Origin: Dicyema japonicum
Taxonomy: Eukaryota > Animalia > Dicyemida
Direction: 5' to 3'
Assembly (NCBI GenBank): GCA_011109175.1
Contig: RDEW01000032.1
Span: 216,404-280,403, forward strand
DNA length: 64,000 nucleotides
In this document: piece after piece, positions 1,591-63,163 of the stretch
Position numbering within the stretch: the first letter of the stretch is position 1
Layout of the letters: every line of letters starts with the position of its first letter
Program-made: the position numbers and the translations under genes
The notes under the pieces: generated by a model
Database searches by the model: none
What the model saw: the letters and a program-made list of their open reading frames with translations, nothing else
Told to the model about the DNA's origin: nothing

Positions 1591-3499
1591 ACCGAGGTTG
1601 TAAACATTAAAAGCTCAGGAAACATATTTTGATTTAAAAGCAAGTAACATCTTTAGAAAAGTTAAAGAAGATATTTAAATTAAGAAGGTGAGTCATAAAT
1701 CAATATTTAATTATTGATTGATCCATGCTCTGTTCACAAATCCTGCCAAGAATAAAGTAAATTGAAGTATTATGCCAATTCCGGACCATTTCTTTGCCAA
1801 AGACCAAGGATTAATAGGGTTTTCAAGGCTCTTCTCGATAACAAGTTTGTTGATATTACTCAAAAATTCATTGATTCGCATATAAAGTTTTTCTAATATT
1901 AAATGGAGAAAGCTATTAGATAGATAGTTGGTAGCACGGCACTAGCGAAATCCTAAACACATATCCATACATGCTATAATTGCACGTTTTTATGTTTATA
2001 TTATATTTGCAGCTGAATTAGCTTCAAAATGATTGAGCTTATATTTTCTGTAAAAAATCTCTAACAACAGTTTTTGATCAAATACAGTTATTGACATAGA
2101 CAGATGCTATATTTCACGTTGGTAACAACTCGAAGATGTGACTTACAACAAATAATGGTGATAATTTTTGAGATCAAGTTTTTTAAGTCGAAAATCCAGT
2201 ATGTTCAAATCATTGAAAATTATTAAGAGAAGCAATCGAAAATAATAGCAGCTTAAATAAATATTATTAATTTTGTCGAATAATACTGTAAAAAATAAGA
2301 GTACTGGAAAGACCGTGATATGGAGTCGGCCATCCAATATAGGAAGGTTGATGCAAAGTTGGATCATAGAGTTATGTGGTTATTTGATAAATTACATTAC
2401 TACAACTCTGTAATTATATGTTTCTGTTATTCTATATTTGGGAGGTTGTACTGAACAAGAATCCTCATGTTATCACAAATGGTAATAAGTAAATATGACG
2501 ATGAAATTAGACAAGTATGGAGAATATGCCGACGAATTACATAGCAAATTAAATAATTTTAAAATTTAGAAATGGACGAATAATATAGTTGTGTTGGGAA
2601 TATTTCGTTTTTTGAAGTCGTTTAAAAATTTTGAACTACAGCCGAATTTCATGGACAATCGTTTGGACGCGTTTGATTCATTTTCTTATTAATATTCGAG
2701 TTTAGCTAAACTTGTAGTTAATACACAAAAACACAATCTGAACATCTTGTAATGCATCAGAGTTCTCACGACTTTTCCATAAGAGCTGATTTATTTCCAA
2801 TATATTTTAAGGATTCTATGAAATTCTGCATTTGAATAAAACTAATTGTAAAAATAAACAATTATAGTTTTCAGTTTTTATTACGTTTTAATTTACGTTT
2901 TACACACAAGAAAGTTTCGGATTGTCAAATAGAACTGTAATCGTGTCAATTCATTAAGAAACCCAATAATTAAAAAATGAAGAATCCAATGTTAACTTAG
3001 ATTAGAGTCATAGGATGTTTTGTAATTGACGTATTTAATTTAAAAAAATAATTATGTTATATTAAAATTCGTCTGAATAATTAAACACTAATGGAATGGG
3101 ATGATGAAAATGAATTATGCGTTGTGGCAGCTTGAAATGTTTTTTTCTGTTCTGAATCATGAGAATAAATTTTGAGAATATTAATGATCCCGGAAAATTG
3201 TTTTTGTCAATATTTAACCTCTATTGGATATTCGTTTATATATTAATAATTATTCAATTATTAAACAATATGTAATAAAATTTTACATAATTTAAAAATG
3301 TATATATTTAAGTTAAATTAGTGTTACAAAATATTTAAAAAAATACTGGCATCAGGTTAGAAAGCTGTCAGAGATAATCTTTAAAGACCGTTGGAATTTC
3401 TTTGTACATGTCTACGCTTAGACCTATTAAACACGCGCCAACTAAGCGATGGATATTACTTCAAACCACCAATTACTAGAAATTTCGAGGAAAACCAAG

Positions 3500-4731
3500 A
3501 ACAAATCTTAACTGTGCTTTACAATGTCTACATGTGATTTAGCACAGTACTCAGTTTCAATGCAATTCACCTTGGTGATAATGCCTACTTTTAGGACACC
3601 TTTCGACACCAAGGTAACAGCAGCATAAAAGCATATTCTTGCTATATTAGAGCACTGCACAATATCGTTGCTTCCAGTCAGATTCTAACTTAGAGGCGTT
3701 CAGTTATTATCTTTCAGACGATAGCTTCGCACTACTGACTTTTCAGTAAAGTGCATGAATCAAATGTCTGACTCTGCAGTTCCTCACGTAATTCGCAGAA
3801 TTACTGTTGCAAACGACACCGAATCAGTAGGGTAAAACTAACCTATCTCACGATGGTCTAAACTCAGCTCACGTTCCCTGTTAGTGGGTGAACAATCATA
3901 CACTTCGCGATTTATTGAAGAGCCAACATCGAAGAATTAAAAAGCGCCGTCGCTATGTACGCTTGGGCGGCACAAGCCAATTATCCCTGTGGTAACTTTT
4001 CTGTCACCTTTAGCTTAAAGCTTTTAAAAGCAATAGGATCGATAGGCCACGCTTTCGCGTTTTGCATACGTACTGAACATGCAAATAGAGCCAATCCTTC
4101 TACCGAAGGTACAGATCTATTTTGCCGACTTCCCTTATCAGCGTTTATCTATTCACCAGAGGCTGCTAACCTTGGAGACCTGCTGCGGTTATTGGTACGG
4201 CCCAAGTGACTGTTAAACTGTTACAGGCGTTTTATGAAACGACAGACATGCATCGGACACGGCAGAAACTGCCATGCTTTGCGGATAAGGTCTCTATGAC
4301 CAACAACTCTCTCGCTGGCTAAACCATTTCTAGAGAAATCGACCCTTTAAAAGAAAAGATAACTCTTCCCGAAATGCCTACCGTCTTAGACTGTAACAAA
4401 AGCGTCACCGCATAAACAGCCAGCTCAGGTTCGGGAATATTAACCCCATTCCCTTTCGCACTTTGGCTAAAACAGCCATTTCAAATGACTTTTCAACGTG
4501 CTTAGGACCGACTAACTCATGTCCAACTAATGTTCACATGAAACCCTTAGGCCCTCAAAGTTCCCATTTGAGTAATTGCTACTACCACCAAGATCTGCAC
4601 TAGAGAGCAGCTCATCTTTAGCAGGTTAAACTTACATTGCCACAACGGCCCTGTATAGGTCAGATGCTACAGCGTTATCCATTTTCAATGCCAGTTAATT
4701 CGACAGGTGAGTTATTACACACTCCATAGAG
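3500..4731 (-). rRNA. Degenerate 28S/LSU rRNA fragment (3' part), dispersed pseudogene
   Basis: Reverse-complement LSU core blocks, e.g. cagtagggtaaaactaacct..., ttatccctgtggtaacttttct and cttggagacctgctgcgg, with substitutions and an internal deletion near 4090. Confidence 0.9.
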
Positions 4732-5585
4732 CAGAGCTTTTCAAAAAATAATTCTCGCGGCACACTAATCGTAAAAAAAATAATCCACGGCACACATTAA
4801 AAAATAAAAAAATTAAATTTTTAAGATGTGTAAAACTAAGTACAAAAATTGGTAATTTAATGCCCAAATTTTATTAATAAAAAATGAATTCTTAATTATT
4901 ATTGTTTATCTTCATTATTTTTTGTTCATATTTATGACTAAACATAGTCCGAGCAATAATACGACAAGCAGGGATTATCTAGTTTTCGCCAATAATGTGA
5001 GGTTTTAGTTGTTTTGCTATCACTTCTGAGATCAGGTATGAACATTTCAATGATTCCTTTGTGTTTAAAAAAGTTTCACTGAACATCAGATCTACGATTC
5101 ATAGTAAAAACTAAATAATACTTAAGTGTTTTTTTCAAATGGATAAAATAATCCACAGATTTTTCGGAATAGTCGGATGCTTGGAAGTAAAATGTCTCTT
5201 TAGTTTGCTAGGAACCATAGCATCACTTGCCAAAACTTCCATGCAAATTAGACATTGAGGTAGTTTATTTTTATCTTTACATATAAATTCAAATGACAAA
5301 TAAGAATCTTTATAAGAACGACGAACTGATTTACCCATAAGCACGTTGATGCGCACGTTATTAAATAATTAATAAATAATGGTTAACCAATGTAAATGTC
5401 ATTTAATGTATAATAAAAAAATAATTATTTTAATTTTAGTAATTATTTTAATTCGTTTAACTTTTTAAATTAATTTAGGTCAAAAATGTATATAAATTTA
5501 TTCAAATTTGTATTTGGCAGCGGCACACTAGAAATTGTCTTGCGGCACACTTAGTGTGCCACGGCACACCGTTTGACAACCTCTG
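4732..5585 (-). mobile_element. Internally deleted hAT/Buster DNA transposon inserted in the LSU pseudogene
   Basis: Imperfect TIRs cagagcttttcaaa / tttgacaacctctg. 8-bp TSD ccatagag (4724-4731) / ccttagag (5586-5593) of the nnnTAnnn Buster type. Minus-strand BED finger (PQCLICMEVL...KLKRHFTSKHP) and SYLISEVIAK..KPHIIGE segment. Confidence 0.9.
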
Positions 5586-6010
5586 CCTTAGAGGCTTCCA
5601 ACTACTAAGGCCACCTTCCTGTTGTTATAATCAACTGACACTTTTTATGGTATTCTGTGTGCGTCTAGTCAAGCACCTTAACCAGGCGTTTGGTTCATCC
5701 CACAGCGCCAGTCATGATTACCATAATTGGCCCACTAGGCACCCTTATTTTACGTATGACTACACTCAAGTTAGTCACACTTTTCACACGTTTAAAGTTT
5801 GAGAATAGTTTGCACCCGTATAAGCACAAATCCTCTAATCATTCGCTTTAACATATGAAACTAGTCTCGAGCGCCAGCTATCCTGATGAAATGTCGGAGA
5901 GAACCAGCTACTAGATGGCTCGATAAGTATTTCGCCCCTATACCTAGCTTCAACAATCGATTTGCACGTCAGAACCGCGATAGACCTCCACCAGTGTTTC
6001 CACTGGCTTC
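5586..6010 (-). rRNA. Degenerate 28S/LSU rRNA fragment continuing beyond the transposon
   Basis: LSU reverse-complement motifs ggttcatcccacagcgccagt, tggcccactaggcac, gatttgcacgtcagaaccgc and ctccaccagtgtttccactggcttc, collinear with the sequence before the insertion. Confidence 0.88.
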
Positions 6011-7530
6011 TTATTTTTCGAAAAGTGCATTTAATACTGATAATTTGGCATGACCAGGATACTAAAAGCGGCTTGATGAAATTAAAATCTTACTATCTTC
6101 CGGGTGCTGAATGTATTTACTCTAATGTCCTACTAACATAGAAGAAATCTTAATCGACACACGTTTCGTACTATTGATCCATATCAACAACAGATCTCCT
6201 AATAGCGCCTAAGAAATGTGGTAAAAATTGCTCAGAAATGCTAGAAGTAAAAATATCATGATTCCATTAGTTCTTCACGTATTTTTGGGATTTATTTGAT
6301 ATAGTAGGAAGCCTTCGTCTTTTCTCACGTCAGGTCACACCCAAAAACCATAACGTCAGGAAAAATCTGTGACTTGTATAGCTATCTCGATAGCCATAAT
6401 GAGAGGAACGTTGATTTTACACTTTGATAAAAAACATGATTTATTACTTCGATTCCGCACAAATATTATCAGCCCAAATTATCAGACGGGATTCGATGCA
6501 CATATTGTTTTATTCGACGTTTCCCTATTTTTAATAGTAAATGTATCGATTTCTTACAATTCCGTTAAACAAGAGATACTAGGAGATACATCTACATAGA
6601 AGAGATGAAGACATTAATTAATCTAGAGACATGCCATACTAGACCAGAGATGCGTCACCAGTTTAATTTCGACAAATGATTATTAGGTTAACTACGACAT
6701 ATCATCTATTCCACAGTTCATTAATTTTAAGATTCACAGAATTTTTACAAGGATACTAGGCTTTTCTGAAAATGCTTTTGTCTAGCTTTCGTAAAAAATT
6801 TCATTTCTTTTGTGAAACTTTATACAAGTTAGGGAGGCTGAGGTTACTTACATAACTAACTAGGCTTCCCCTGGACACACACTTTATTTAAGTGAAGAAC
6901 GGTTATTATTGTAACTAATCGTAGAAGGAGAAGCAAAAAATGCTCTTCACTTCTTTTTTGATTTTTATTGTGTTTATGTACTTTATAGACTGCGTAACTG
7001 GGATAAAATGTGAAAATATCCTAGTTACCCAATAATCTAAGAAGGACTAATAGAATCAAACCGACAAGGAATGGCATCTTAAATTATTCCATAACGGGCT
7101 TGAGTCTTTAGATTGAAAAGACCTGTTTTGAGGTCATTCAATATTCTGAAATATCGAGTATTACGGTGATAGACTAATCTCCTCGTTTCCTTAAAACACG
7201 AAGCACGTGAGACCCATTGTCTCTCCAGTTAACTCTGTCGCAATCAGATACAATCGTTACCATAACAACCATCAAATAGCTATTAATTCGGGTGGAGTGA
7301 ATGAAAGGGTATCCTGAAACTTTCCTGAATAGACGAGTCTCTGAGTTTTCGACGATTGAAATTTACAGTTAATTTTAAATATTAATTGCATAAATTTTTA
7401 GTTTTTTAGTGAGAATGAGTCAATATATTTTATTCGAAAATTTATAACTCTGATTCACAAATTTGGCTAAAATACGTGAAATTTTATTCTTATAAATAAG
7501 AAATTCTTGAATAAAAATTAGAATACAAAA

Positions 7531-17329: not shown

Positions 17330-17720
17330 GGCCGCCTCGAGTAGCCATCTCATTTTTGCTTGGTGTTCTTCCCGGGTTCCACGTCATTTCCGGATTGGGC
17401 CGGAATTTCTAACTTTTTTGGAGGGTAGTAAGGCTCCGGTTTTCCTCACTAATTCCTCAAAAGGTGTAGGGTTTAGAGGTGTCCAAGAAAACCTTTGCAA
17501 AGCCTTACTGGCCAATTTTTGGAAGGTATTGATTCTTTCTATATTCTTGTTTGATAGGTTGGTACCCCATGCAGCACACCCGTAAGTTAGAGACGGTTGA
17601 ATATACTGCACGTAGAGCGAGTCCAAATTTGAGTTGAAACACCCATTATAATGTCCAAGGAGTGTTTTAACAAAATTTAGCTTTCGTTGTGCGAAGAGAT
17701 GACGTTGTCGATGTGTTAAA
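17330..17720 (-). mobile_element. LINE ORF2 C-terminal remnant (I/Jockey/CR1 group)
   Basis: YVQYIQPSLTYGCAAWG...IERINTFQK. Related 3' ends lie at about 1030-1285, 35480-35935 and 60600-61010. Confidence 0.7.
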
Positions 17721-18295
17721 ATTATTATTATTAAGGCACTTTCACGAAAGCCATAATGCATGTGCAACACTCAAAAAAACCATATTTATAATTAGTCTTT
17801 TCCATCTACCTCTGTCGAATGCGAGTGATCTCAATTCGCCCAGGTCGTCCCCCGTCTTTAGATTTTTTCTCACACGATTTAAATTTTTGTTTAAGGCAGT
17901 CGGAAGTGTCGATCTAGGTCGTCCGCGGAAGGGTTTTTCGCAACTGTCAAAGTAATCTTCCATCGCTTTGTTAGCGGGTGCGTCCGGGTTCATTCTTAGT
18001 ACATGCCCAAATAGCCTCCACCGGGCTTCTATCACATCCTTGCTGATGTAAGAACACATACACTTGTTGTAGATACCAGTGGTTGATATTCTACGTGACC
18101 ACTCCATTCCGAGTAAGCTTCTTAGTTGCTTTCATGGAACGAATCCAGTTTCGATAGTTCCTTGAAGGAACTTCCCCATTTCCCAGTGTTGTACAGTAGG
18201 ATCGATTTCACAAACGCGTTGTAAAGCCTGCATCTGATGTCAATTCCAAGTCGTTTGGCCCTTAGCCATCCTTTCTTCAGTTTAACCATTGCCGC
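17721..18295 (-). mobile_element. RTE-clade LINE 3' remnant with (TAA)n tail
   Basis: RLYNAFVKSILLYNTGKWG...LDSFH and RWRLFGHVLRM...RGRPRSTL...LAFDRGRW. Tail at 17721-17733. Confidence 0.8.
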
Positions 18296-18447
18296 ATTTG
18301 TGTTAAAATAAAATAGTTATTAGAATATTATTGTTTTAATTTAAAAATTGTTTAATTTTATTTTTATAATATAAAATTTATTTTTGCATATTTAAACTAA
18401 TAAATTATTTTTCGTTGGACGTGAGACATTTTTAATTAACCTAATTC

Positions 18448-21400
18448 ATGGATCTAATACAAGCTGGGAAATTTTACATTGACTTGATGCTTAACGATGC
18501 TGGAAGTGGAATGAAGGCCATGTTATTTGACAACCACACTGTATAACCTAATATTTATGTAGATAAAAATTATGAGTGTCCTGTATTCCCAGAGTCAAAT
18601 GTTCCAAAAGGAGGTCTTTCTATTTTCACAGCTGAAGACCTCATCCTCTGAGCTACTTCCTTTCATTCCTGCCATAGTATTCGTCCAGCCAACTGAAGAA
18701 AATTTGTCGGCCATAATAAAAGAACTCGAGCATCCAAGATTTTCCAGCTACTCTATATGTAAGCATTCAATCTTGATACCCACGTGTTAATCATTTACTC
18801 TTTCCTTGCCACGTAGTCTCTGTTGATGTTTTACTGGTTCCCCCAGTTTTTTTCTCTTTGTGTCCATTCATAGCTTTCCTTTGTTATTTTAGTGTGCTAG
18901 CTTGACCTTTTTATGATTTCTTTATGTGTGCTATAGTCACTAATAACGATTAATACTAGCTTTGCATAAATGAATTCCTAGCTACCCACGTGTCATTATT
19001 ACACCTCATTTGTTCGATTATTAGCATCTACTTTATTGTTCTTCCAATATCTACTTAGTTAATTATCAACCCCGACCTCACTGCCTTTTGGAGGTCGGCT
19101 CTCCGCAGGCGTCCTGCTGGACGCTTCATCAGACGTTCACTGGAAGTCCGGGGGAAATTTGCACTTATTATTTTATAGCTATTAAATTTATTTATTAAGG
19201 TTTGTAATTATTTAAATAAAGCCTAGCCACGTGTCATAATTTGATTCCTTACTCTCGTGTTTTTTTATGTAGCGTCGTTTACTTTTTATACTAAAATAGC
19301 GTACTTTACTTTAAAATATACTTTTCAGTAATTATTGACTTGTTTAGTTGGTGATTAGTGGTACTTTTACGTATTTATTTTTATAAGTAACCACGTGTTA
19401 TCCTATGAATCCTTTACTATCATTATTGTGATATTATGTGCGGTCTATTATTTTTGTGGTGCTGATTAACTATATAAGACTATTGCGATTCTTATGCGTC
19501 TATTTGGTATCTGTTACTCTCTGATTATTATTATTTAAGAGACATTTATATTTCCATTTTGTTAGTTGTCTGTGCTATTCATAGTTTATAGGTTATCTTT
19601 ATCACGTTTGATCATATTTACTGATTACACTTGGCTGCGGTATTATACGTTGATTTTGCGGTTTTACTTGCTTTTTACTATTTTATTTTTTTGTATGATC
19701 CTTGGTTTTATTTGTTCTGTTTTATTGGCTGGATAATTTGAGCTCTTCGGTTCTTTATTTTTCATTTCGTATTTGTCATTACTCCTTATTATGCCTGGTA
19801 TCCTATTTCACATCCACGTGGCCTTGACTCGGCTAGAATTTAGTAATTTATTCTACGTTCCTTATGGCAGATTTTAGACTATAATTCTATTGCTTGTATT
19901 TACTGCTACTTAATTGTTTATGTTACCTCATATCCATGTGTCTCATGATCGTTTCCACCTCTTGTAGCCTATCACCATAACCACGTGGTATATTTATACT
20001 GCTAATTCACTTACCGTATTTTATTAGTCATTGTTGTGTTTATGCACTTTAAATTATTTAGCAATCCAATTTGACCACTTCCATCCTTTAAAAGTCTCAT
20101 GGGGACTGGTCTGAAATTATTAGTTAAAGCTATTTACTCTCATTCTTGCCTCATTGGCGATTAACAGAGTGCTGTTTCATTGATTTAGTGACATACTATT
20201 CTCTCATTGTTCATAATTACTTGTTAATATTTTCTATCTCTATTATCTCTTGCAACTTTTTCCGCTGCAAGGTTCTACCCTTTATTTGATACTGAGACCC
20301 ACGTGGCTTATTTGAAAATTATGAAATTAGTTAGATATAATTTATGTTTTTTATTTCAATAAATTTTGATTTAAAAAAATTTATGTTTACTAATTTAAAT
20401 AGATTTTTCCTACTATTGTCCACGTGTGTACATTGAGCAAATCGCCAAGGCGGATGATGACGAACGAGTGAACTGTATTAAAGAAATATGCCTCGACTAT
20501 TATATTCTCGGAAATAAACTCTTCACTTTTGATGTTAAAAATGACCGGGTTTAATGCGAAAACTTATATTGTAGCCAAATTGGGGACTTGGTGATGAGAC
20601 TTGTACGCACCTGTGTAACAAATTATCTGCAGTAGTAAACTCTCTTGGTATCCACCCTGAAATCAAATACCAAGCTTCGTCACTCAGCTGTGAAAAACTT
20701 GGAGTCGAACTTAAGGTTGTGACTGTAGGAGTAAATTTTAGAATCTTCTAGAAATTCAAGGAGATTATCGCGGCCAAAATGACTCATTACTTCTTTTGGT
20801 AGACAGAACCATCGACCCCGTTGTCCCAGTGCTTAATTCGGTTGGTTCAATCCACGTGACTAAAATTAGTGGACATACGAGGCAATGATTCACGAAATAA
20901 TAGGAATCGACAACTGTAAGGTCAAGTTCAGTACAGAAGGCTATCCAGAAACTACAATGTTGCTCAACGCAGCGAATACGTTTTACCATGAGGTGACTAG
21001 TACTTTACACGTGCCAGAATAGACTGCACTACTACGATGAAATTGTTGAAAAAATCTCGGCGAATATAGGAAAAGTAAGGGAAATTAGAGAGGAGATATC
21101 TCAAGCTGGAACCATCTCCAATATGAAAGTTTTCTAAGCTCATTATGCAGGGATTGGTGGAGAAATACCCACAACAACGGAAATGGCTGTCGATGATCAC
21201 CCAACACTGTGACTTGGTGGGGGAACTTACGAAATTAGCAACTGAACGTAGTCTATTTGATGTCTCTTTACTGGAACAGGATATTGTGACCTATAATCTT
21301 GATTTTCACCAAACTATCCAAGTTTAATTCCATTTTAAGTTTTTTTAGAGAATTGCCACCCTTTTTCAGGAAAATCCAGAAATCACGGCCTTGGATGCGA

Positions 21401-21921
21401 TCGGATTGGCGGTTCTGTGTTTGATAAAATTCCCTGAATGTGCGAATTATAAACTTGAAATTTTTAACAAACATTTGCTCAAATTGAACGTCCCACGTCA
21501 CATTTACCAGATTCCGCAAGATTTTCAACGGATTGTGCAGAGCAAGCCAGCAAAGAATGCCTCAATTTCTAAGGGATTCGTCTCGTGGTGGCGGAATACT
21601 ATCAAAAATACAACTATGGGCGGAAGTACCAATATGTATAAGAGATATCGTCCCTATCTGGTCTCAATCTTGGAAGAAATAGCTCGGAATTCGCTCTCCA
21701 TTATTGATTTTCCCAGCACTATTGTGTTTAACCCCTTTTCTCTTGGGAATAACTGTAGTATGTCGCATGGGAGTAGGGGATACTCTAAGGTGGTCGTATT
21801 TGTGGTCGGAGGATTCACATATGCTGAGGCTGCTGCCGTGGAGATGATGGATTTGCCTTTTTCTGTTGTTCTCGGTGGGACGATGGTCCATAATTTCGAG
21901 ACGTTTGCTTTGCGTTGTTGA
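18448..21921 (+). CDS. VPS45: Sec1/Munc18-family vacuolar protein sorting 45, 9 exons, 550 aa, intact
   Basis: Exons 18448-18540, 18563-18758, 20403-20548, 20575-20715, 20742-20840, 20870-20992, 21018-21128, 21151-21321 and 21349-21921 splice in frame. Motifs YSQSQMFQKEVFLF, LLLVDRTIDPVVPVLNSWTYEAMIHE, VVVFVVGGFTYAE and LGGTMVHN match VPS45. Confidence 0.93.
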
Positions 21922-22305: not shown

Positions 22306-23049
22306 CAGTGACTTGAGCAGTGGAATTAATTATTATTAATTAAAAAATAACTTGTATTAAATCGAATTAATGGAAAACAACGTTGTTTTCTCCTTAAGCA
22401 GATTTCAAAAAGTGGCTATTTTTGACATTCATATATGCTTCTAGTTTTGTGTTAAAAATTTGGCTGCAAAATGAAAACGACTGTAAAGTCTCTCGTGGTT
22501 ATGAAAGATTAGAATCTCAACAAACAGTTAGTTAGTTAAGAGCTCTTTCGCGTAGCCCTAAGGGGGTTTCGCTTGAACCATGCTTTGCAGCCATCTTCCT
22601 CGACATCATATTTCTGGCCCTCATTCGATAGATTAATCAGGCGGTTCACCTGTTGTTGTTGTGGCACCCGGTGCAAGTTTTTCATGAAAAAGAGCCGTTT
22701 GAACTTATCCACCCCTCTACGTCTTTTGGAAGGGTGGCCTACCAATTTGTTGTTCCCTCATTCGAACATCACCAAGATCAACAAAAAGAAAACTATTTTT
22801 ACTATTTGATATTATTATTATTTAATTTTTAAAATTATTTAATATCTATTTTATATATAATTGATTCCGTGGTGCTATTTGGCTAATTGGATAAAGTTTT
22901 CTGTTGTTTTGTCTGTTTTTTTCTCTCTCTTTTTATAAGAGTGGCGACATGTGATCCACCTGTCTAGGTGGTGCCCAGTCGCAGGCTGGCACGAAAAGGA
23001 TCATTTTCTCTCCCCCACTCCACTGGAGGGATTTCCACAACTGCATTAA

Positions 23050-43700: not shown

Positions 43701-46700
43701 GAGAATGTGCCAGGGGAGAAGAAATATGTCAGGAGAGTCGCTTGTAATATCCTGTTCCAACTACGACGAAAATCGTACGACGACTAAGGCTGTCGAGTTT
43801 TTCAATCTCGCGGAGTAAAGATGTTAAGAAAGAGGTTATGGAAAATTGACATAACGATTTTTGAATTAACGTTCTGTCCTTGGAGAGAACCCTGTATGGG
43901 CAGGCATGCCAGGGGGAGTAACAGTTAGCAATCACTGGCTCCTCTTGTAGTCGTGAACGCATTGTCTACCAAGACATACGTATTTATTTAACTTTAGGGT
44001 CTCAGCCTTCTCCGAAGCAAAGCCCGAGTTAGTTGCTGTCGTTGGAAGGTTGGAGGGAGAGAAGCTATCGACACAAGTAACGTCTAGGAAAGGTATTTAC
44101 CACTTTCCCATGGAAGAAAATGGTTCTGCCCAGATTTGGTTAGCTTGAGCAAGTCCAAGCCGCTCCAATTGGACAGGAAACGTATCTCTTAGTGGACAGT
44201 TCATTTTGAACCAGTTGCCGTGGAAACGGATCATAGGGAAAAAGTCACTGGTCCTGCTAAACAGAACCGGCTCATCGCCAGGAAAATAATGATAGGAGAG
44301 AAAGGAGCTGGCTCATTGAGTGCATTTCCTTGCAATTCGTCAGGGAAATTCCTCAATTATGAGAGCAGCCAGCATTTGTTAACTGTTAATTTTTGCGTTA
44401 TATAAAATTGGTTAATTCTCAAAAAAATTAAATTTTCGTACACGTGCCAGTTCTGTAAGGAGACGGAAACCCGCTTAGCCTGTCCTTTTCCAAGGCAAAA
44501 GAAAGTCGATTGGCTATGAAGGTCCCCTCCCCAATGGGATTCATCTGCAGGGGTAAAAGAAGGCTCTCTCGTACGGAGTGTGAACAATAAGAGACCACAA
44601 TGTTGGATAAATCGTTTGATTGCGGGAACTGTGATTACTTGACTGTTTGTTCAGATTTGTTTATTACAGTTGTAGTACCTATCGGGGTTGGTATGAGACA
44701 ATCTTCGGCGGACGACCTGGACTACTAAGAAAACTAGCGCGAAACAGAGGATCATGGTCGAGGCTGACGGAGAGGATGATTTGGAATACGGAAAGGAAAC
44801 TTAACAAATTTTATGTTTTCTCGGAGTGCTTTTTGATAATAAAATGTAGTAGTTTTGAAAAAGCATTAGATTCAGAAATGCTCTCTTTATTAAGTTTTCC
44901 TACTCCCTAGAGAAGTTCCATAATGACAGATATGGACGGAAGTGATGCTCGAACAAAATGTGTCTTTTTATGACCGTGGGAACCGGGATCATTTACTTAG
45001 TTGCCAACTCTCTTTCTTTTTAATCTGGCGATCCCAAAACAATAAATATTAAGTTGAAATATGTACTACAATAATATATATATTTTACAATTTTTTAGTA
45101 CTGAAATTAATAGTTTCCTTGGGATTCAAAAAACGTGTTATTGAGTGGTTTTTGGTGCATAGAATAGTATTGGTATGCATAATCCCAATCTCTGCATCTC
45201 CTAAGTATCATCCCTCTGTATCCCCTGAGTAGCATCTTCATCTGTTTTTCGAATATCCTGTTCCAACTACGAGGAAAATCGTACCGATATGGCACTGCTC
45301 GTCATACCTCTGCATATGAAGGGAGGTACCCATAAGCACGTGAATACTTCGGGTTTCTCTTGCGCAGTGCTCCTTGCTATCCTTTAACTAAGGAGGAATT
45401 TGCAAGGTTTGCGGAACTATCGAAAATCTTATTCGAGGTTTCAAAGACCGCACTAAAGTATCTGGGACTTATCTTCAAAAATAACCCTGTGTTTGTTAAT
45501 TTCTTGGGGAGACAGTCCGGTAGAAGTCAATTGATGAGCGCTACCGTTTCGTATTACTTTCCATCACTTAATTAGAACTGTTAATTTATAATAACTTACT
45601 TATCTTCTAACTAGTTTTTATATCCCATTTTTCTTTTTATAGGTTTCCGTATTTCATCAAAGTCATCCGTTTTTTTCAGTTGTTCCCAATTCAGGCATAA
45701 TCGTGATGCAGACAAGAAAAAGTGCAACAAAAGGCCTTCGTAGCACTTTTTTAAATCCAAAATTAATTCTTTTTTTAACTTTTTATTTATTTATTTAAAA
45801 ATTACAATTTATTTGATGTTGAGATCACACTATGTTTAGAGATAATTTAAACCAAAAGCATAGCTCTATTTTTACTCTGTGGCGTCAATCTGGTCATTTT
45901 CACGATTGCGTTAGAAGCCGCAGAAATCCGTAAATATCAATAGAAACCCACGCCTATTTGATTTCTGCACATAAAGAGCGTCGTGGATACAGTAAAGAGT
46001 GGTAACTATTGAGAGCCTTGCTGAATCCTCGCGTGTCTGTTGTGGAATACCGGGATAACTTGATCAGCGTTTCTCTTTGGGTTAAAGCCAATAAACTAAA
46101 GTTTTTCATTTTAACCAATAAATGGCTATTCAGACAGAGAACAAGCATCTTTTGGAGTGCCTAGAAGGATGCGAATTTCCACTTTATCTTTTGCAAGCTT
46201 CAATGCAAGTCCTCAATTACGGTAGTTGATCCACGTGGCTATTTCTTCAAACTGAAAATTTATAAAGCCGTCTGAAGTAAACAGGTTAGGTAGGAAAGGT
46301 TTTTTCATGTTAAATTGACACTGAGCACCGCCACAGCAGGTGAACCGCATGATGTAGAGGAACCTTCCAGAAAACGATAATCACTGGTGGATAGTTCGAG
46401 GAGAACTTTGAAATTGGTAAAGCTGAGTCACTCAATCAGTTGAATTTAACACTTTATTTCTGGGTTGTCTTCAAGATGGCGACGAGTTCTTCTGGCTGAA
46501 GGGGATCCTCCTACCTTTTCCATGACCAACTCCCTGGTAAAGATTCCCAATATGTAGACTCTTCCGCCTAAGAATGAAGTGATGTCTGGCCGATAGGGCG
46601 ATGCTGAAGATGGTAGAGGGGCGATCTACTTATCCACCTCTATTCGGAAACAGCTACACGTGGACACTTGGTTAGACGAAAATTTTTATTTTCTAGTTGT

Positions 46701-57987: not shown

Positions 57988-59649
57988 TGTAGGTGGTAGT
58001 GTAATCCAAAACGATCGTTAATGTTCTTATATTACAGATACGTCAATCTTAATCGCATCCGCAGATATCTACGGAATTAATCTTTAATTCCTTTACTTAA
58101 TTGTACGTGTCTCCCTGACGACTGGAAAAAAGACTCGGGAGATCTAATAGATACTCTGACGAAGGGCTAAAGAAAATGGACGAAGCAGTCAACTTATTGT
58201 AAGCAGAAACGGCCATCAGTGAATGTAAAGCCAACGCATCGGGCCATGACTTTTCGAACATGATCCTATTCAAAGAGAAACATGATTGTCTTAACCACGT
58301 GTCTGGAATACAATACTATCTCTATTATGAACTCTTATATTCAGTTCCTTAATAAATAGCTCTTAGTAAATGACTTTAAGATGACTTGATGACGAAAGGA
58401 AACCAATCGATGCATAGTGGAAGAAAGGATCGATATATTCAAAATGATCAAAGGTCTCATGTCAGATTCTGAGACTCATTAAGGGATGCAGGGTTCCGTG
58501 AAGTTTCGTTGTATGTGTGGAGGATAGATACCCTTCACATACCCTCCTAATTTATTGTTTATATTACACTTGCTTTGTCAGCAGGATCTACCTTTGCGGA
58601 GCGTCCAAATGTTGACTGACTAAAGGAACTAAAAATACTCAGCTCATAGATAATGATTTCGTTTCGTCCCAATCGCCTTCGTCGTTGCAGACATCTAAAG
58701 AACGATCACTGCACGGTTCTGAGACCCAAGGAGCGGTGATGTCTTCATACCTCATGAGATTAGTCAGGAAACTTTTCAACTGTTCGAAATCATGGTTACT
58801 TACTGCAAAGTATATTTAATTAACTAAAAGTAAAATAGACGACTTCCTACTGTCGGGAGAATATATCTTCACATTAAGTTAGTTTGGAGTGTCAGTCATG
58901 TCATGAAGATAATAAGTCTTATGAATGTCGGTTAACTAGAAATAAGCGACATTTTTTAAGAATGTTATGGTTTCGCTCAAAGTATTGTAATCGGAAATAG
59001 TTCTTGCATGCAGGCCTTTAACTAGCCTACCTATCTTAATTGCTGATAATAATAGTAGGACCTTCGTGAGAGCCATAATTCGAGACCCGCACGTGCAGGA
59101 CTTTTTTAAGAGTAAAGAACAATTATGCTAATTAATTATTGAAAAATGACAAAGAAGTGTTTTAACTTGTTTTTATTGTTGCATATAAGTCCCCGTAGAC
59201 AATTCGGCTTCCCATTGAGGCATCACTGATGACGGCGCCTATCGGAAATGCGTTGAACCTTTAGCCGGAATGTACAGCAGCGAAAAACGTCTGAATTTTG
59301 TCCAACACTTAAGACACTACGCCATCGTTTATTTGCTAAGTCGTCAATATATTTACTCTGCCACTTTTTTTACTTTTTAGTTTTTTATTTTATAAATATT
59401 ATTAAAAAAGTTTCATAACTAACTTTAAATGCGAATAAAATAAGCGGCGTGGTGGTATTTTAATGTTCGTTCATCCGCAAAGTGGAAAATAAGTGACTTT
59501 GGATGCTACTTACGTTTCTCTCTTCAAAACTTATACAGAAAGTCACTTGCCCTGTGTCAGTTACTACAAAGGCCGAAACGTTGGAACGAAAAAATTGTGA
59601 AATCTTAAGCTTTCAGTTCGTCCTTATGTCAGTCAGTGATCATTGGGAC

Positions 59650-61010
59650 ATAGTAGCCTTACCACACATCAGTGATTGTCAGAAAGAGGAGACACTGAGA
59701 TGGTTGATAAAGTCACTTGTATGCAAATTTAATATCTGAGGTTTAGAGAAGTAGCATACGTTGTCTTCAGGAGACTAAACTGGTTAATGGTGTACTGTGA
59801 ACATGAGAATTCCTCATTAATATTGATTGCTGGGGGTATTTGAATGCCACAGTAAATACTCGGAGCTGGGTGGAGGAAACCTTCAAAGGGAAAGAAACAC
59901 GTGAGAAATCTTTAGTCAAGTGAATAATTTATTCATCTGCAACACTGCCTTCATCCAAAAAATGGACTACATAAGCTCTCTCGACAGGAAGAAGTCGATA
60001 GGTCATTAAGATTCACCTGAGTTGATCCCTGAGTTAAAAGAGGTCTAAATTAAAGTTAAAAAATGAGCCTAAAATAACATTTTGGGGATCAAATCTTGGT
60101 TTAGGACTGATCTCCGAGTAAGAAGAAATAGCGCATGGCAAAGTAAGATTATGTTTTATTAACAAGAAACATTTTAACGTCTCCTTTTTGGAAGGTCTTG
60201 AGTCCTCACGTGTGATTTGATAACATTTCTAAAATATGCCTGAGCCTCTTCATGTGTGGAAGGAGAAATATTACTCCAAGGATCTTCGACCATTGAGGGA
60301 AGATAAAACGTACAATGTGGTAAGTTGTTATTATATTCAGTAGTATTCAATTCTCTATTTGACATCAACAAAAATAAAAGTTCTGACTTGTTTAAAAACT
60401 TATATTTAAAATCTTATAAATTAATTGATTAAATTAAAATAATCATTAATTAATTCAATATTAATTCCGTTTGTCGTTGTAGTTCACTCACATATGACGA
60501 TATTTTACTTGGTTTCACACTACCAACTAAAAAATCACAAATAGTTTCTAATAAACTAGTTCTTCAACTTTAGGGAAGTCTGACCGGTAAATGGTGGCTA
60601 CTGTTGGCACGCAAAACTTCCCCACATAAAGATTTGATTGACTACTTTTAATCCTCGCTCGGGACAGCGAACAGAACCCCATGCCACACAAAAAGGTAAA
60701 TTTATGAACATTCGAGTAATCCTCGTTTGTCTTCGCTGTGGAATTAATTCTTTTCTGCAAACATACAGATATAAACTGAATGATATGAAGATCGTAGCAA
60801 CTTTTGGAAAGAATTGCCATCCACCAACTCCCCTGGAATCTCTGGTTTGCAAAAACTGTGGGATCTACGATCACTACGATATCAATTTTGCTTTACCTCA
60901 GTACGGACATGTGTTGACTCGGGAGATGAACACCGGGTAAGATGAGGGCATTACTCGAACAGTTGAGATCATCAAATTAGCTAGTTTGGTTTTACCGTGG
61001 TACACAGAGA
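59650..61010 (+). mobile_element. Decayed LINE pieces (APE region and C-terminal Cys/His region, 3' end)
   Basis: LQETKL-type and GDxNAH-type remnants near 59770-59860. VILVCLRCGINSFLQTYRYKL...CKNCG...H at 60700-60900. Confidence 0.55.
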
Positions 61011-62028
61011 AGAAAGTTAATGGTAACAACTAGTTAAATTTACTACCTCCCGTGATCGCTAAAGCAGAGACCATCCGATGTTACATAAATCCATACGGAA
61101 CCAGTGGAAAATGAAGAAAGTTGTAGGTGCAGCTCCAATTAGTGGAGGAGAGCAAATGATTTTTATAAGTGGATAACATGACCACTATCTTGTGGAATAA
61201 GGGCAGATAAGGAACAGAGACAATGAAGTAAGATATTCGTTGGAGTAACCAGTATAGACAATCAGAAGCATTTTTATTTGGCATTCAAACCACTAAGCTT
61301 CCTGGTCGAGCAGCAGTAGAACTTATGTATTTATCAGCCTTTCCCTTTATTGGGATTACTTTTAAACTCCATGGGAGGAAGTGAGACATGGCATCAGGAT
61401 CGCTTAATTATACGATAAATATTATTCTCATGTTTTCTGAATAATTTAAGTGGCAACGATGTGAGTCACTCACAAAGTGTTCCTGGGTAACTTCGTAGTA
61501 CATCTGAATAAATATTTTTATCCTTTTGTTAGGCTAATTCCTAGGGGCTTCTTGGATCCATGAACTCAGAAGACGTCCCATGCCTGGCTGGCATCCAAAA
61601 AGATTATTCCTTCCATACGCCAATGGAGAAGTCCTCACAATGGCAGATTCTTGGAAAAGATACATTGAGTGTGAGTCCTTTTATAGACGATCCGGTTCTT
61701 TAGTGAGATGTTCACATGACGACGTCACTCGTAAAGCCAAGCATCGTAGATGGGTGTAACCTTCAGCTGTACAGCAGCGAGATTCTAACTATGGCCCATT
61801 ACGTTACACTGATCGTAATAATACGTGAGAATTTGCTCGAATTAAACCACTCGAAGTCACTCAAAGAATATTTTTGTAGAAGCCACGAGCGAGCTCTCAA
61901 AATTCGAAATTTAAATTTGTTAGTGGTTGATAACGCCAGAATGCAATGGTAAAAATTAGTTGTGGTTAGCGCACGTGATATAATTGTCTTAATGTCAAAA
62001 CTACGATATTGAGTGAATTACCCATTAC

Positions 62029-63163
62029 ATGATGAGGAAATATGTGGAAACTTTAATCACTTATTCTTAGCAATCAGGCACTGTCGTGGGAGTCGAAGAT
62101 TTGAATCCAGAACTGGATGCCTCAATTTTGCGGAAGGCAATGAAAGGAATAGGTATTGGAAGATCATACATACAGGAACCAACGAGGAGGCGCTAATAAA
62201 CATTTTATGCACAAGACGAATTTTCAAAGGCAGGTGATAGCTGAAGAGTACAAGTCAAACTACGGGCGGGTATTTCAATCAAATTGACCTTAAAGGACTT
62301 GAAAGACGACATTCACGGAGAAACCGGTGGAAATTTTAGAAATCTGCTACTCGGTCTTTTAGAAGAGGAAGTTGATTACGACACAAGAGAGCTTAATAAA
62401 GCCATCAAAGTCGATTCATTTCCTCACATGTAGGGTCTGGGAAGTGATGAAGAGGTTTTGATTGAAATTATTTGCACGAGGACTAGCCAACAGCTTGAAG
62501 CCATAAAAATGAATTACGAGAAAAGTATTCAGTCTGTTAACTTCCTCAGTGTTTGATCGAACACTGGAAGAAGACATCTGTGATGATATTAGCGGAGACT
62601 TAAAGAGAATAATTATATCACTTTTACAGAATAATCGAGAAACGGGGACACTTATGACCTGTAAATTTAATTTATTAGTATTTAGAGATGAAGTTATAGA
62701 GGATGTTGAATCCCTTCAAAATGCAGGGACTGAAACATGGGGGACTGATGAGTCAGTGTTCAACAGAATAATGGCAAATCGATCATTTCCACATCTCCAA
62801 GGACTTTTCCAGGAATACCTCGAACGAACGGGGAATCAATTTGAGGATGTACTTAAAGAAGAAATGACTGGTGATCTTCTCAAAGCATATTTGGCCATAG
62901 TCCAATGTGTTGTCGATAGGCCTGGATTCTTTGCTAGAAAATTATCAGATGCAATGAAAGGAATGGGAACAAACGAGGATACATTGTCGAGAATTATCAT
63001 ATCGAGAAGCGAGGTGGATTTGGTTCAAATCATGGAATGGTACGGCATATTAACCGATGAGAGTCTCGCTTTGAGAGTAGAGGTCTTTTTAGTGAAGATT
63101 TATCTATAGGCGGAAACAAGTGGGGACTATCAAAGAGCGCTACTCACACTAATAGGAAACTGA
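62029..63163 (+). CDS. Annexin, 8 exons, about 319 aa, with two apparent 1-nt deletions
   Basis: Four annexin repeats (LRKAMKGIGTNE, AIKGLGSDE, WGTDESVF, AMKGMGTNE; ETSGDYQRALL). Introns 62044-62070, 62153-62175, 62270-62295, 62410-62433, 62525-62549, 62661-62685 and 63083-63109. Confidence 0.92.

Follow-up and report, generated by a model that had tools for sequence, protein, structure and literature searches.

E-boxes of the Myc/Max type are found in the 5' introns of target genes, such as ODC1, prothymosin-alpha, and nucleolin intron 1. In cyanobacteria, the highly iterated palindrome HIP1 (GCGATCGC) occurs many-fold above expectation in both genes and spacers, and biased repair or short-patch conversion has been proposed as its source. 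Yeast introns of unusual length reportedly contain complementary "zipper" segments that shorten the distance between the 5' splice site and the branch point (Goguel and Rosbash 1993; Libri et al. 1995). Dicyemid introns are among the shortest in animals. Clusters of sites for a single transcription factor (homotypic clusters) are the subject of Gotea et al. 2010, as cited in PMC8431614.

The second intron of a Vps45-like gene from Dicyema japonicum, which lies in the 64,000-nt stretch of DNA analysed here (the window), can be compared with each of the first three systems. It shares with the Myc/Max intronic E-boxes a CACGTG core, C flanks, and the lack of a 5' T, as well as the presence, a few hundred nucleotides past the gene start, of several copies within the first intron of any size. 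It differs in having seven copies at gaps of 164 to 423 nt, rather than two to three close together, in the single orientation and 14-nt context of these copies, in the over-abundance of CACGTG that extends to exons, and in that the Dicyema sites are known from sequence alone. The likeness to HIP1 is that of a short palindrome above compositional expectation in coding DNA (an exon) and non-coding DNA (micro-introns and the long intron). Unlike HIP1, the Dicyema word belongs to an animal nuclear genome and has a 6-mer core, its intron 2 sites are over-dispersed (P = 0.0017) with directional flanks, and its one-off neighbours are undepleted. As in the yeast zipper introns, a long intron stands among short ones and has self-complementary elements towards each end (18781/18810 and 20300), but the helices would be just 6 to 8 bp, with no extension by the flanks, and CACGTG is also found in exons and micro-introns. 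The intronic placement of nine of the gene's 10 sites, the spacing that is evener than chance, and the shared directional 14-nt context are new here.

The host gene (18448 to 21921, forward strand) comprises nine exons and is a Sec1/Munc18-family member nearest to Vps45, as judged from the spliced model, Pfam Sec1 matches, and solved structures. The spliced model has an unbroken ORF to the stop codon at 21919 to 21921, and the Pfam Sec1 matches fall in exon 2, exon 3, and the final exon. Among solved structures, the C-terminal exon matches the Vps45 entries 6xjl and 6xm1 alone; Sly1 and Vps45 are roughly equal matches to the N-terminal exon. No near-identical Vps45 turned up in a representative protein library (best hit, 48% identity; E value, 9e-9), and an exact-protein look-up with the predicted product returned no match. 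The introns measure, in order, 22, 1,644, 26, 26, 29, 25, 22, and 27 nt, with a 38-nt in-frame alternative also possible for the fourth (26 nt). This independent gene model re-derived the disparity from which the original prediction had started, namely, seven introns of 22 to 29 nt versus 1,644 nt for intron 2. The spacer upstream of the gene is just 148 nt because a LINE fragment adjoins. The only Pfam result for other host genes in the window is an annexin (62549 to 63106).

Intron 2 (18759 to 20402, forward strand) is a phase-1 GT-AG intron whose sense strand is rich in T (T, 44.5%; A, 23.4%). It opens with the GTAAGC donor at 18759 and carries TACTAAT 9 nt ahead of the terminal AG (20401 to 20402), both as originally claimed, and thus displays the GT, the AG, and the branch-point-like motif near the 3' end of a U2-type intron. 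Splicing it out brings exons 2 and 3 back into frame and rejoins the Sec1 domain: exon 2 covers Sec1 profile positions 11 to 72 and exon 3 covers 75 to 120, so no part of Sec1 is missing across the intron, and read-through from exon 2 meets a stop at 18788 to 18790. DNA contigs of three runs span both borders with flat depth equal to the exon level. Further, a cDNA-type contig of run X5 spans 18417 to 18758 in 320 nt, ending precisely at the predicted donor boundary (18758), and its shortfall of exactly 22 nt is the size of micro-intron 1. The 18758/20403 joint was not found in RNA contigs at 90% likeness, a setting that probably excludes multiply spliced contigs, and run X5 gave no cover downstream of 20405 at this setting. 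RNA from intron 2 was detected at approximately 12% of the level found for the exons. We regard the 1,644-nt segment as a real spliceosomal intron, present in a single copy. A germline-eliminated segment of the ciliate kind was rejected, as the host is an animal, the DNA runs show no joint skipping the segment, and the GT-AG splice instead yields a Tyr that fits the Sec1 alignment.

The sequence between the motifs was originally described as no obvious repeat or transposable element, and this was borne out by TRF, by blastn comparison of intron 2 with its own sequence and with the remainder of the window, and by read depth. TRF, the repeat search, self-blastn, and shuffle-controlled spacer alignments found no tandem array in intron 2, and its matches elsewhere in the window were confined to AT-rich low complexity. 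A tandem repeat or satellite was rejected, since likeness among units is limited to positions -4 to +9 and column identity beyond these is at background. A transposon was rejected because intron and exons show the same read depth and the adjoining LINE is approximately 480-fold deeper; the intron has no terminal inverted repeat or long ORF. A nested coding gene was rejected as well (longest ORF, ≤56 amino acids), as was a known RNA (no Rfam match at E values up to 5 and no tRNA by ARAGORN), and these searches gave no sign in intron 2 of an intron-hosted small RNA (snoRNA, scaRNA, miRNA, or tRNA), for which a match to a described family or box motifs with a terminal stem would be expected. It contains a GC-rich island with two perfect hairpins (19072 to 19158), without an Rfam match. 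In a second sample, where comparison over 1,224 nt shows the inter-motif DNA to differ by 28 substitutions and 36 gap letters, this island has no substitutions, while the remaining intron varies. The four hexamers covered in that sample are untouched by all 26 changes listed, which does not amount to significant constraint (0 hits seen versus 0.5 expected).

CACGTG was confirmed at 18781, 18987, 19228, 19392, 19815, 19982, and 20300, preceded each time by C on the forward strand, with gaps of 206, 241, 164, 423, 167, and 318 nt as originally reported. The first site, approximately 330 nt downstream of the start codon, reads TACC-CACGTG-TTAA (18777 to 18790), followed by TACC-CACGTG-TCAT (18983 to 18996), TAGC-CACGTG-TCAT (19224 to 19237), TAAC-CACGTG-TTAT (19388 to 19401), CATC-CACGTG-GCCT (19811 to 19824), TAAC-CACGTG-GTAT (19978 to 19991), and GACC-CACGTG-GCTT (20296 to 20309), all on the forward strand. 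Sites 5, 6, and 7 contain the 8-nt palindrome CCACGTGG, and the +1 base of site 5 is polymorphic (G/T) in run X3. Three one-off copies lie on the same strand: CACGTA with a C flank, 29 nt past site 1 (18810 to 18815); CACGTT, the near-match already noted at 19603 (19603 to 19608), whose downstream flank is like that of site 1; and CATGTG (CpG to TpG) with the left flank TATC, 47 nt ahead of site 6 (19935 to 19940). The additional sites of the gene are likewise real and on the forward strand: a CCACGTG in exon 3, within codons for Pro-Arg-Val (20421 to 20426), another within the 29-nt micro-intron 5 (20853 to 20858), and a CACGTG within the 25-nt micro-intron 6 (21008 to 21013).

The seven intron 2 copies compare with 0.12 expected for CACGTG (5,000 dinucleotide shuffles; maximum, 2) and 0.024 for sense-strand CCACGTG. 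No word in intron 2 other than CCACGTG is significantly enriched; TTTACT, considered as a second co-occurring motif (11 versus 3.3 expected), is non-significant after correction. Elsewhere in the window, any 1,644-nt stretch holds at most three sites. The original prediction treated the array as special to intron 2, and this part does not hold. Of all hexamers in the window, CACGTG exceeds expectation the most (32 versus 5.3 expected; 6-fold), followed by CCACGT (3.6-fold), so an explanation peculiar to intron 2 is not required for the motif itself. Within the gene, nine of the 10 sites are intronic, while introns make up 52% of its length (binomial P of ∼0.016). The intron 2 sites are spaced more evenly than random (P = 0.0017 for a minimum gap of at least 164 nt; P = 0.019 for a coefficient of variation of at most 0.40) in a post hoc test whose result weakens once the decayed copies at 18810, 19603, and 19935 (29 to 212 nt from live sites) are counted. 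Over the whole window, the spacing and orientation signal is weak.

The seven sites have a common directional 14-nt context, T-A-N-C-CACGTG-K-Y-A-T, with A at -3 in all seven. Ten of their 14 half-sites are C-flanked and none is T-flanked; among the other half-sites of the window, 15 of 44 carry a C flank, where C makes up 18% of the bases. A 5' T distinguishes binding by Max, USF, and Cbf1 from that by Myc and Pho4 (PMC8431614). According to the supplement of PMC6736024, D. japonicum has kept 14 genes with an HLH domain, the second largest of its transcription-factor families. Having no 5' T and a preference for C, the sites follow the C-flanked, Myc/Max-type E-box, and the putative reader most likely belongs to the Myc/Max network. 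Of the readers originally listed, the Myc/Max type fits, while USF, TFEB/MITF, and Cbf1/CDEI are argued against by the lack of T-flanked boxes (TCACGTGA or GTCACGTGAC; CLEAR/TFE-MITF, USF, Cbf1/CDEI) among the 14 half-sites. The absence of T flanks argues against boxes of the Cbf1/CDEI type and, hence, against a centromere-like element.

The intron 2 array is best read as a row of candidate DNA sites for a bHLH-ZIP protein of the Myc/Max type, about a nucleosome apart, forming the densest patch of a wider CACGTG over-representation; we hold this reading at about even confidence. Intron 2 would have stayed long in a genome otherwise shrunk to introns of approximately 25 nt. CACGTG, mostly as CCACGTG or CACGTGG, would be over-represented in the animal's own DNA, with the array as its densest local patch, and would accumulate more freely in unconstrained transcribed DNA than in codons. 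The sites would act at the DNA level, most likely through bHLH-ZIP binding by a dimer of the Myc/Max-network type, with roughly one site per nucleosome-sized interval, and the intron may serve as a homotypic binding cluster that organises the chromatin or transcription of VPS45. The argument for maintenance is that the DNA between motifs retains no residual similarity and carries substitutions in the second sample, in which the covered hexamers are intact. As to the retained, nucleosome-spaced binding array of the original prediction, the long intron and its roughly even, nucleosome-scale gaps are real and binding is the best available reading; specificity to the intron and the centromere-like part are not upheld. 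A stronger version, in which intron 2 was kept long as a dedicated chromatin-phasing or regulatory module whose oriented sites are each held by an asymmetric (heterodimeric) bHLH-ZIP, about one per nucleosome, seems to us improbable. Against the main reading, a homodimeric reader gives no reason for seven same-facing asymmetric flanks, and the CACGTG excess may stem from a mutational or repair drive lacking local function.

The directional context is missing from the window's other sites, an absence that suggests either that the units share a common descent or that some local process was at work. Under common descent, a one-site unit of approximately 200 nt would have been multiplied head to tail by an old tandem duplication, its spacers would have diverged, and CACGTG pressure would have kept the 14-nt core. 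This would account for the same orientation throughout and for the shared context; neighbouring sites are alike, with a +1 base of T in sites 1 to 4 and G in sites 5 to 7, the decayed copies at 19603 and 19935 retain the flanks of live sites, and a weak upstream match is common to the first and last units. However, TRF detects no array, column identity is at background outside -4 to +9, local alignments between inter-motif segments score no better than shuffles (z = 1.5 and -0.5), and the unit length varies from 164 to 423 nt. We therefore regard such a relic as unlikely; as an account of origin, it could be compatible with a binding function. A genome-wide DNA-level drive, acting through biased repair or short-patch conversion and functionless here, would have let intron 2 reach an equilibrium density. 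The excess in the window indeed spans exons, micro-introns, and spacers, and the VPS45 micro-introns are denser still (2 sites per 177 nt). Under such a drive, sites should keep no minimum distance, but those of intron 2 are over-dispersed; one-off neighbours, including CATGTG, are undepleted (ratios of 1.1 to 1.7), unlike in VSP-type repair; and three decayed copies survive in the intron. A VSP-like repair signature is ruled out by the undepleted neighbours in the window, and the drive as a whole appears doubtful.

At the RNA level, CACGUG copies might pair in the pre-mRNA or bind a splicing factor, folding the intron for a spliceosome adapted to 25 nt. The single sense-strand orientation agrees with this, and in the minimum-free-energy fold 19392 is paired with 19982 (probability, 0.92), while 20300 pairs with 18810, a one-off copy, enclosing most of the intron; the intron RNA level, at about 12% of that of the exons, fits slow splicing. 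But pairing is predicted for just one of the 21 site pairs, the conserved A at -3 and the A at +3 yield A-A mismatches so that the helix is not extended, closure of the ends is expected of any long RNA, and CACGTG is also enriched in exons and in introns of 25 to 29 nt that need no folding. In addition, the sites read CAC|GTG, with AG before GT in none of the seven, and a motif without AG|GT cannot serve as a recursive splice site (ratchet point). The original suggestion that the motif aids long-intron splicing thus finds little support, and we consider such a signal highly improbable. The remaining alternative, that a nested gene or small RNA such as the GC-rich island keeps the intron long and that CCACGTG forms its promoter or promoters, could draw on the two perfect hairpins, on the invariance of the island amid a variable intron, and on the detection of intron RNA. 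It is opposed by the lack of an Rfam match even at an E value of 5 and of a tRNA, by ORFs that are all ≤56 amino acids, by fold z-scores of merely -1.8 and -2.1, and by an RNA depth that is flat throughout intron 2 and does not rise at the island, and we give it very little credence.

With dicyemid introns so short, one that has stayed at 1.6 kb naturally draws attention to sequence that cannot be discarded. Intron 2 is single-copy, non-coding, and fast-evolving, yet it holds seven same-facing 7-mers at nucleosome-scale gaps, and it is compact enough to serve as a test case for the excess of CACGTG in D. japonicum, as the drive, selection, and RNA-level models differ here in the spacing, orientation, polymorphism, and occupancy that they predict. 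Should the sites be ordinary debris left at equilibrium by a mutational drive, this locus would be merely a striking example of that excess. If the intron is instead a dedicated module, it would be the cleanest natural read-out of the system that writes or reads CACGTG throughout the Dicyema genome and would provide a direct handle on the protein and the purpose of that system.

The G+C content of the window (36%) and the 22- to 29-nt introns of its genes are consistent with the published D. japonicum genome, with its 36.7% G+C and mean intron length of 38 bp (PMC6736024), and with the report naming D. japonicum as the sole non-myxozoan animal with introns so short (PMC13644364). An ORF-preserving path searched from the ATG at 18448 gave a forward-strand model of the VPS45 gene with nine exons and a stop codon at 21919-21921. 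Its introns are intron 1 at 18541-18562 (22 nt), intron 2 at 18759-20402 (1,644 nt), intron 3 at 20549-20574 (26 nt), intron 4 at 20716-20741 (26 nt, with an in-frame 38-nt alternative), intron 5 at 20841-20869 (29 nt), intron 6 at 20993-21017 (25 nt), intron 7 at 21129-21150 (22 nt), and intron 8 at 21322-21348 (27 nt). The product can fairly be called a "Vps45-like SM protein" on sequence similarity, because the Pfam Sec1 profile is matched in exon 2 (positions 11 to 72), exon 3 (75 to 120), and the last exon (369 to 572), and the solved structures matched by the last exon are Vps45 only; for the N-terminal exon, Sly1 and Vps45 are about equally good matches. All three DNA runs have single-base gaps at 20562 and 20564, and micro-intron 3 is therefore 24 nt there versus 26 nt in the window. 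Full-depth mismatches to the window at several other positions (e.g., 18854, 19316, 19408, and 21267) are either consensus errors or a different haplotype.

The 1,644-nt segment is a real long intron, as originally predicted. The Sec1 profile continues unbroken over it (72 to 75, with one Tyr codon split), read-through from exon 2 meets a stop codon at 18788-18790, and the segment begins with a GTAAGC donor and ends with TACTAAT-N9-AG. Contigs from three DNA runs of one sample span both borders, the segment depth equals exon depth (about 800 to 1,800 in DNA run X1), and none of the contigs of these runs lacks the segment; it is therefore real single-copy genomic DNA, which rejects both an assembly artifact and an eliminated segment. 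Intron 2 is strongly T rich on its sense strand (T, 44.5%; A, 23.4%), with an AT skew reaching −0.54, in contrast to flanking exons that range from neutral to A rich; transcription-coupled mutation bias and a preference for U-rich introns are candidate causes.

Transcript evidence comes from X5, a run from another sample dated 2017 and labeled "DNA?". X5 must be RNA, because the LINE fragment at 18200-18346 lies at only 3.7 times the intron depth in X5 versus about 480 times single-copy depth in X1, and because an X5 contig covers the 342-nt span 18417-18758 in 320 nt, a deficit of exactly 22 nt that matches micro-intron 1 in size. The same contig stops exactly at the predicted donor (18758). 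Intron sequence is carried by other X5 contigs, including one spanning the donor unspliced (18742-18996) and one of 1,224 nt within the intron (19052-20293); X5 depth is 10 to 14 in the intron versus 73 to 86 in exon 2, which puts intron-containing RNA at about 12% of the exon level. With reads placed at a threshold of 90% likeness, the X5 results show neither the 18758/20403 joint nor any cover past 20405. This setting is the likely cause, as a cDNA contig spliced at six micro-introns would differ from the genome by about 11% in gap letters.

Within the intron, renewed searching recovered the seven sense-strand CCACGTG sites exactly as originally reported (CACGTG at 18781, 18987, 19228, 19392, 19815, 19982, and 20300), with gaps of 206, 241, 164, 423, 167, and 318 nt. 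Dinucleotide shuffles of the intron gave 0.12 CACGTG expected (maximum of 2 in 5,000 shuffles) and 0.024 sense-strand CCACGTG, versus 7 seen of each; CCACGTG is the sole significantly enriched word of the intron. No 1,644-nt stretch elsewhere in the window, outside the VPS45 locus, holds more than three CACGTG. Seven random positions would have all gaps at 164 nt or more with a probability of 0.0017 and a coefficient of variation no greater than 0.40 with a probability of 0.019, in a spacing test that was post hoc and carries the caveat of three one-off copies that lie near live sites and share their flanks. These are CACGTA at 18810 (29 nt after site 1), CATGTG at 19935 (47 nt before site 6), and CACGTT at 19603 (midway in the 423-nt gap), all on the forward strand; speculatively, a copy too near another may be dispensable and so decay. 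The even spacing carries on, with gaps of 121, 432, and 155 nt, through exon 3 and the micro-introns and ends at 21013, about 900 nt short of the gene end. Density is 4.3 sites/kb in the intron, about 0.5/kb in the window, and 0.6/kb in the exons of the same gene, and is no higher in the long intron than in the micro-introns, where two of the gene's nine intronic sites fall (25 to 29 nt). Nine of the 10 sites of the gene are intronic, with intronic DNA making up 52% of its length (binomial P of about 0.016), and noncoding transcribed DNA is thus the word's preferred home in VPS45.

The sequence between motifs had been described as no obvious repeat or transposon, and each comparison agrees. 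TRF found no tandem array in the intron; the intron matches itself and the rest of the window only in AT-rich low complexity; local alignments of the inter-motif DNA score like shuffles (z = 1.5 and −0.5); and outside −4 to +9, column identity among the seven sites is at the compositional background (0.30). A tandem repeat is rejected on these grounds, and a transposon on the absence of window matches beyond low complexity and on single-copy depth. A nested coding gene is rejected by the lack of any intron ORF above 56 amino acids, and a known RNA by empty Rfam (E up to 5) and ARAGORN searches of the intron. The array is a real, nonrandom, nonrepeat feature. The intron (32% G+C) also holds an island of about 60% G+C at 19072-19158, with two perfect hairpins within an outer CCCC/GGGG stem; it has no counterpart in Rfam, and its fold z-scores reach only −1.8 and −2.1. 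Over 19052-19302, the second sample has no listed substitution, and an extra C after 19147 in all runs indicates a probable 1-nt assembly error there.

The seven sites share the context T(−4) A(−3) N C(−1) CACGTG K(+1) Y(+2) A(+3) T(+4), counted outward from the core. C at −1 and A at −3 occur in 7/7 sites, the latter versus 23% A in the intron; A at −3 shows no enrichment at the window's other half-sites (16/44). With A at both −3 and +3, the 14-nt context is not palindromic, an asymmetry that could come from a heterodimer. The +1 base is T in sites 1 to 4 and G in sites 5 to 7, where it gives the 8-nt palindrome CCACGTGG; in place of G, one read set has T at 19821, so +1 switches between the two bases found among the sites. 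TFE/MITF CLEAR boxes are TCACGTGA. A 5′ T is the feature that distinguishes Max from Myc, and likewise Cbf1 from Pho4, and USF sites are recognizable by a 5′ GT (PMC8431614). Since T adjoins the core in 0 of the 14 half-sites and C in 10, the array agrees with the Myc/Max-network type; the USF, TFE, and Cbf1/CDEI types are rejected, and with the last of these goes the suggested centromere-like element. Among the transcription factor families of D. japonicum, HLH ranks second in size, with 14 HLH-domain genes retained (supplement of PMC6736024).

The uniform sense orientation of the sites and the sizeable pool of unspliced RNA would suit a pairing or splicing signal in the pre-mRNA, the originally proposed help for splicing a long intron. 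We rate this as improbable: the full-length fold predicts pairing for 1 of the 21 site pairs (19392 with 19982; probability, 0.92) and pairs site 7 with the one-off copy at 18810, the conserved flanks put A opposite A and do not lengthen the helix, and the word is also enriched in exons and in micro-introns, which have no need to fold. The motif lacks AG|GT, so a recursive splice site is impossible. VSP-type repair is disfavored by the one-off neighbors of CACGTG, which are not depleted in the window (ratios of 1.1 to 1.7; CATGTG, 1.3). The intron evolves fast, since X5 departs from the window by 28 substitutions plus 36 gap letters over 1,224 nt of it, compared with 2 over 320 nt of exon sequence; the four covered hexamers were hit by none of the 26 listed changes, an uninformative result against 0.5 expected.

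CACGTG is the most overrepresented hexamer of the window (32 versus 5.3 expected; 6.0-fold), followed by CCACGT/ACGTGG (3.6-fold), and C flanks 15 of the 44 half-sites outside VPS45, versus 18% C in the composition. As measured within the window, the word and its C flank are thus common enough that neither needs an intron-specific explanation. The CRE-like palindrome GACGTC is also among the top ten hexamers (30 versus 11.7 expected on both strands; 2.6-fold). Near-equal pairs of consecutive CACGTG gaps occur at 44441/45337/46232 (896 and 895 nt), 46657/47851/49053 (1,194 and 1,202 nt), and 58296/59090/59898 (794 and 808 nt). Their flanks are unlike, so they are not repeats, and the pairs are probably coincidence, with a mean neighboring-gap ratio of 0.46 versus the 0.39 of a random process, a difference of about 1.3 SE. 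A host gene, a forward-strand annexin-repeat ORF at 62549-63106 (Pfam Annexin, E of 2e−35), lies close to the CACGTG sites at 58296-61972.

Repeats at both sides box in the VPS45 gene. Upstream, a reverse-strand LINE-like fragment (about 17384-18300) has a translation resembling the C-terminal part of reverse transcriptase, about 480 times single-copy depth in the DNA runs, and no Pfam match; a 148-nt A/T-rich spacer with a 30-nt tandem repeat (18301-18383) separates its end at 18300 from the start codon. Downstream, a second repeat begins at 22526, about 600 nt past the stop codon, with depth up about 30-fold and plentiful loose-ended reads at 22526-22561. One X1 contig set (depth, 54.7 versus about 1,000) links 22355 back to 18296 via 10 A/T letters; this joint would mean that the entire VPS45 unit is circular or tandemly duplicated, but an assembly-graph artifact is at least as likely because both ends are A/T-rich low complexity. 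Elsewhere, three adjoining reverse-strand pieces of eukaryotic LSU rRNA at 3503-6148 (model positions 675-1449, 1456-1888, and 2390-3399) leave about 500 model positions uncovered between the second and the third, and the first piece, at 1,556 nt, is stretched. This arrangement suggests an rDNA copy that is partial, rearranged, or interrupted by insertions.

The array is best understood as the most pronounced local case of a broader CACGTG overrepresentation, the excess being measured in the window. The predicted protein-binding array stands as to its nonrandom, nucleosome-scale spacing and C-flanked E-box type; binding itself we infer, and a Myc/Max-type bHLH-ZIP protein that binds the DNA would be the most likely mechanism. 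Three new details constrain the mechanism: the preference for intronic DNA, a minimum spacing at nucleosome scale, and the orientation of the 14-nt context.
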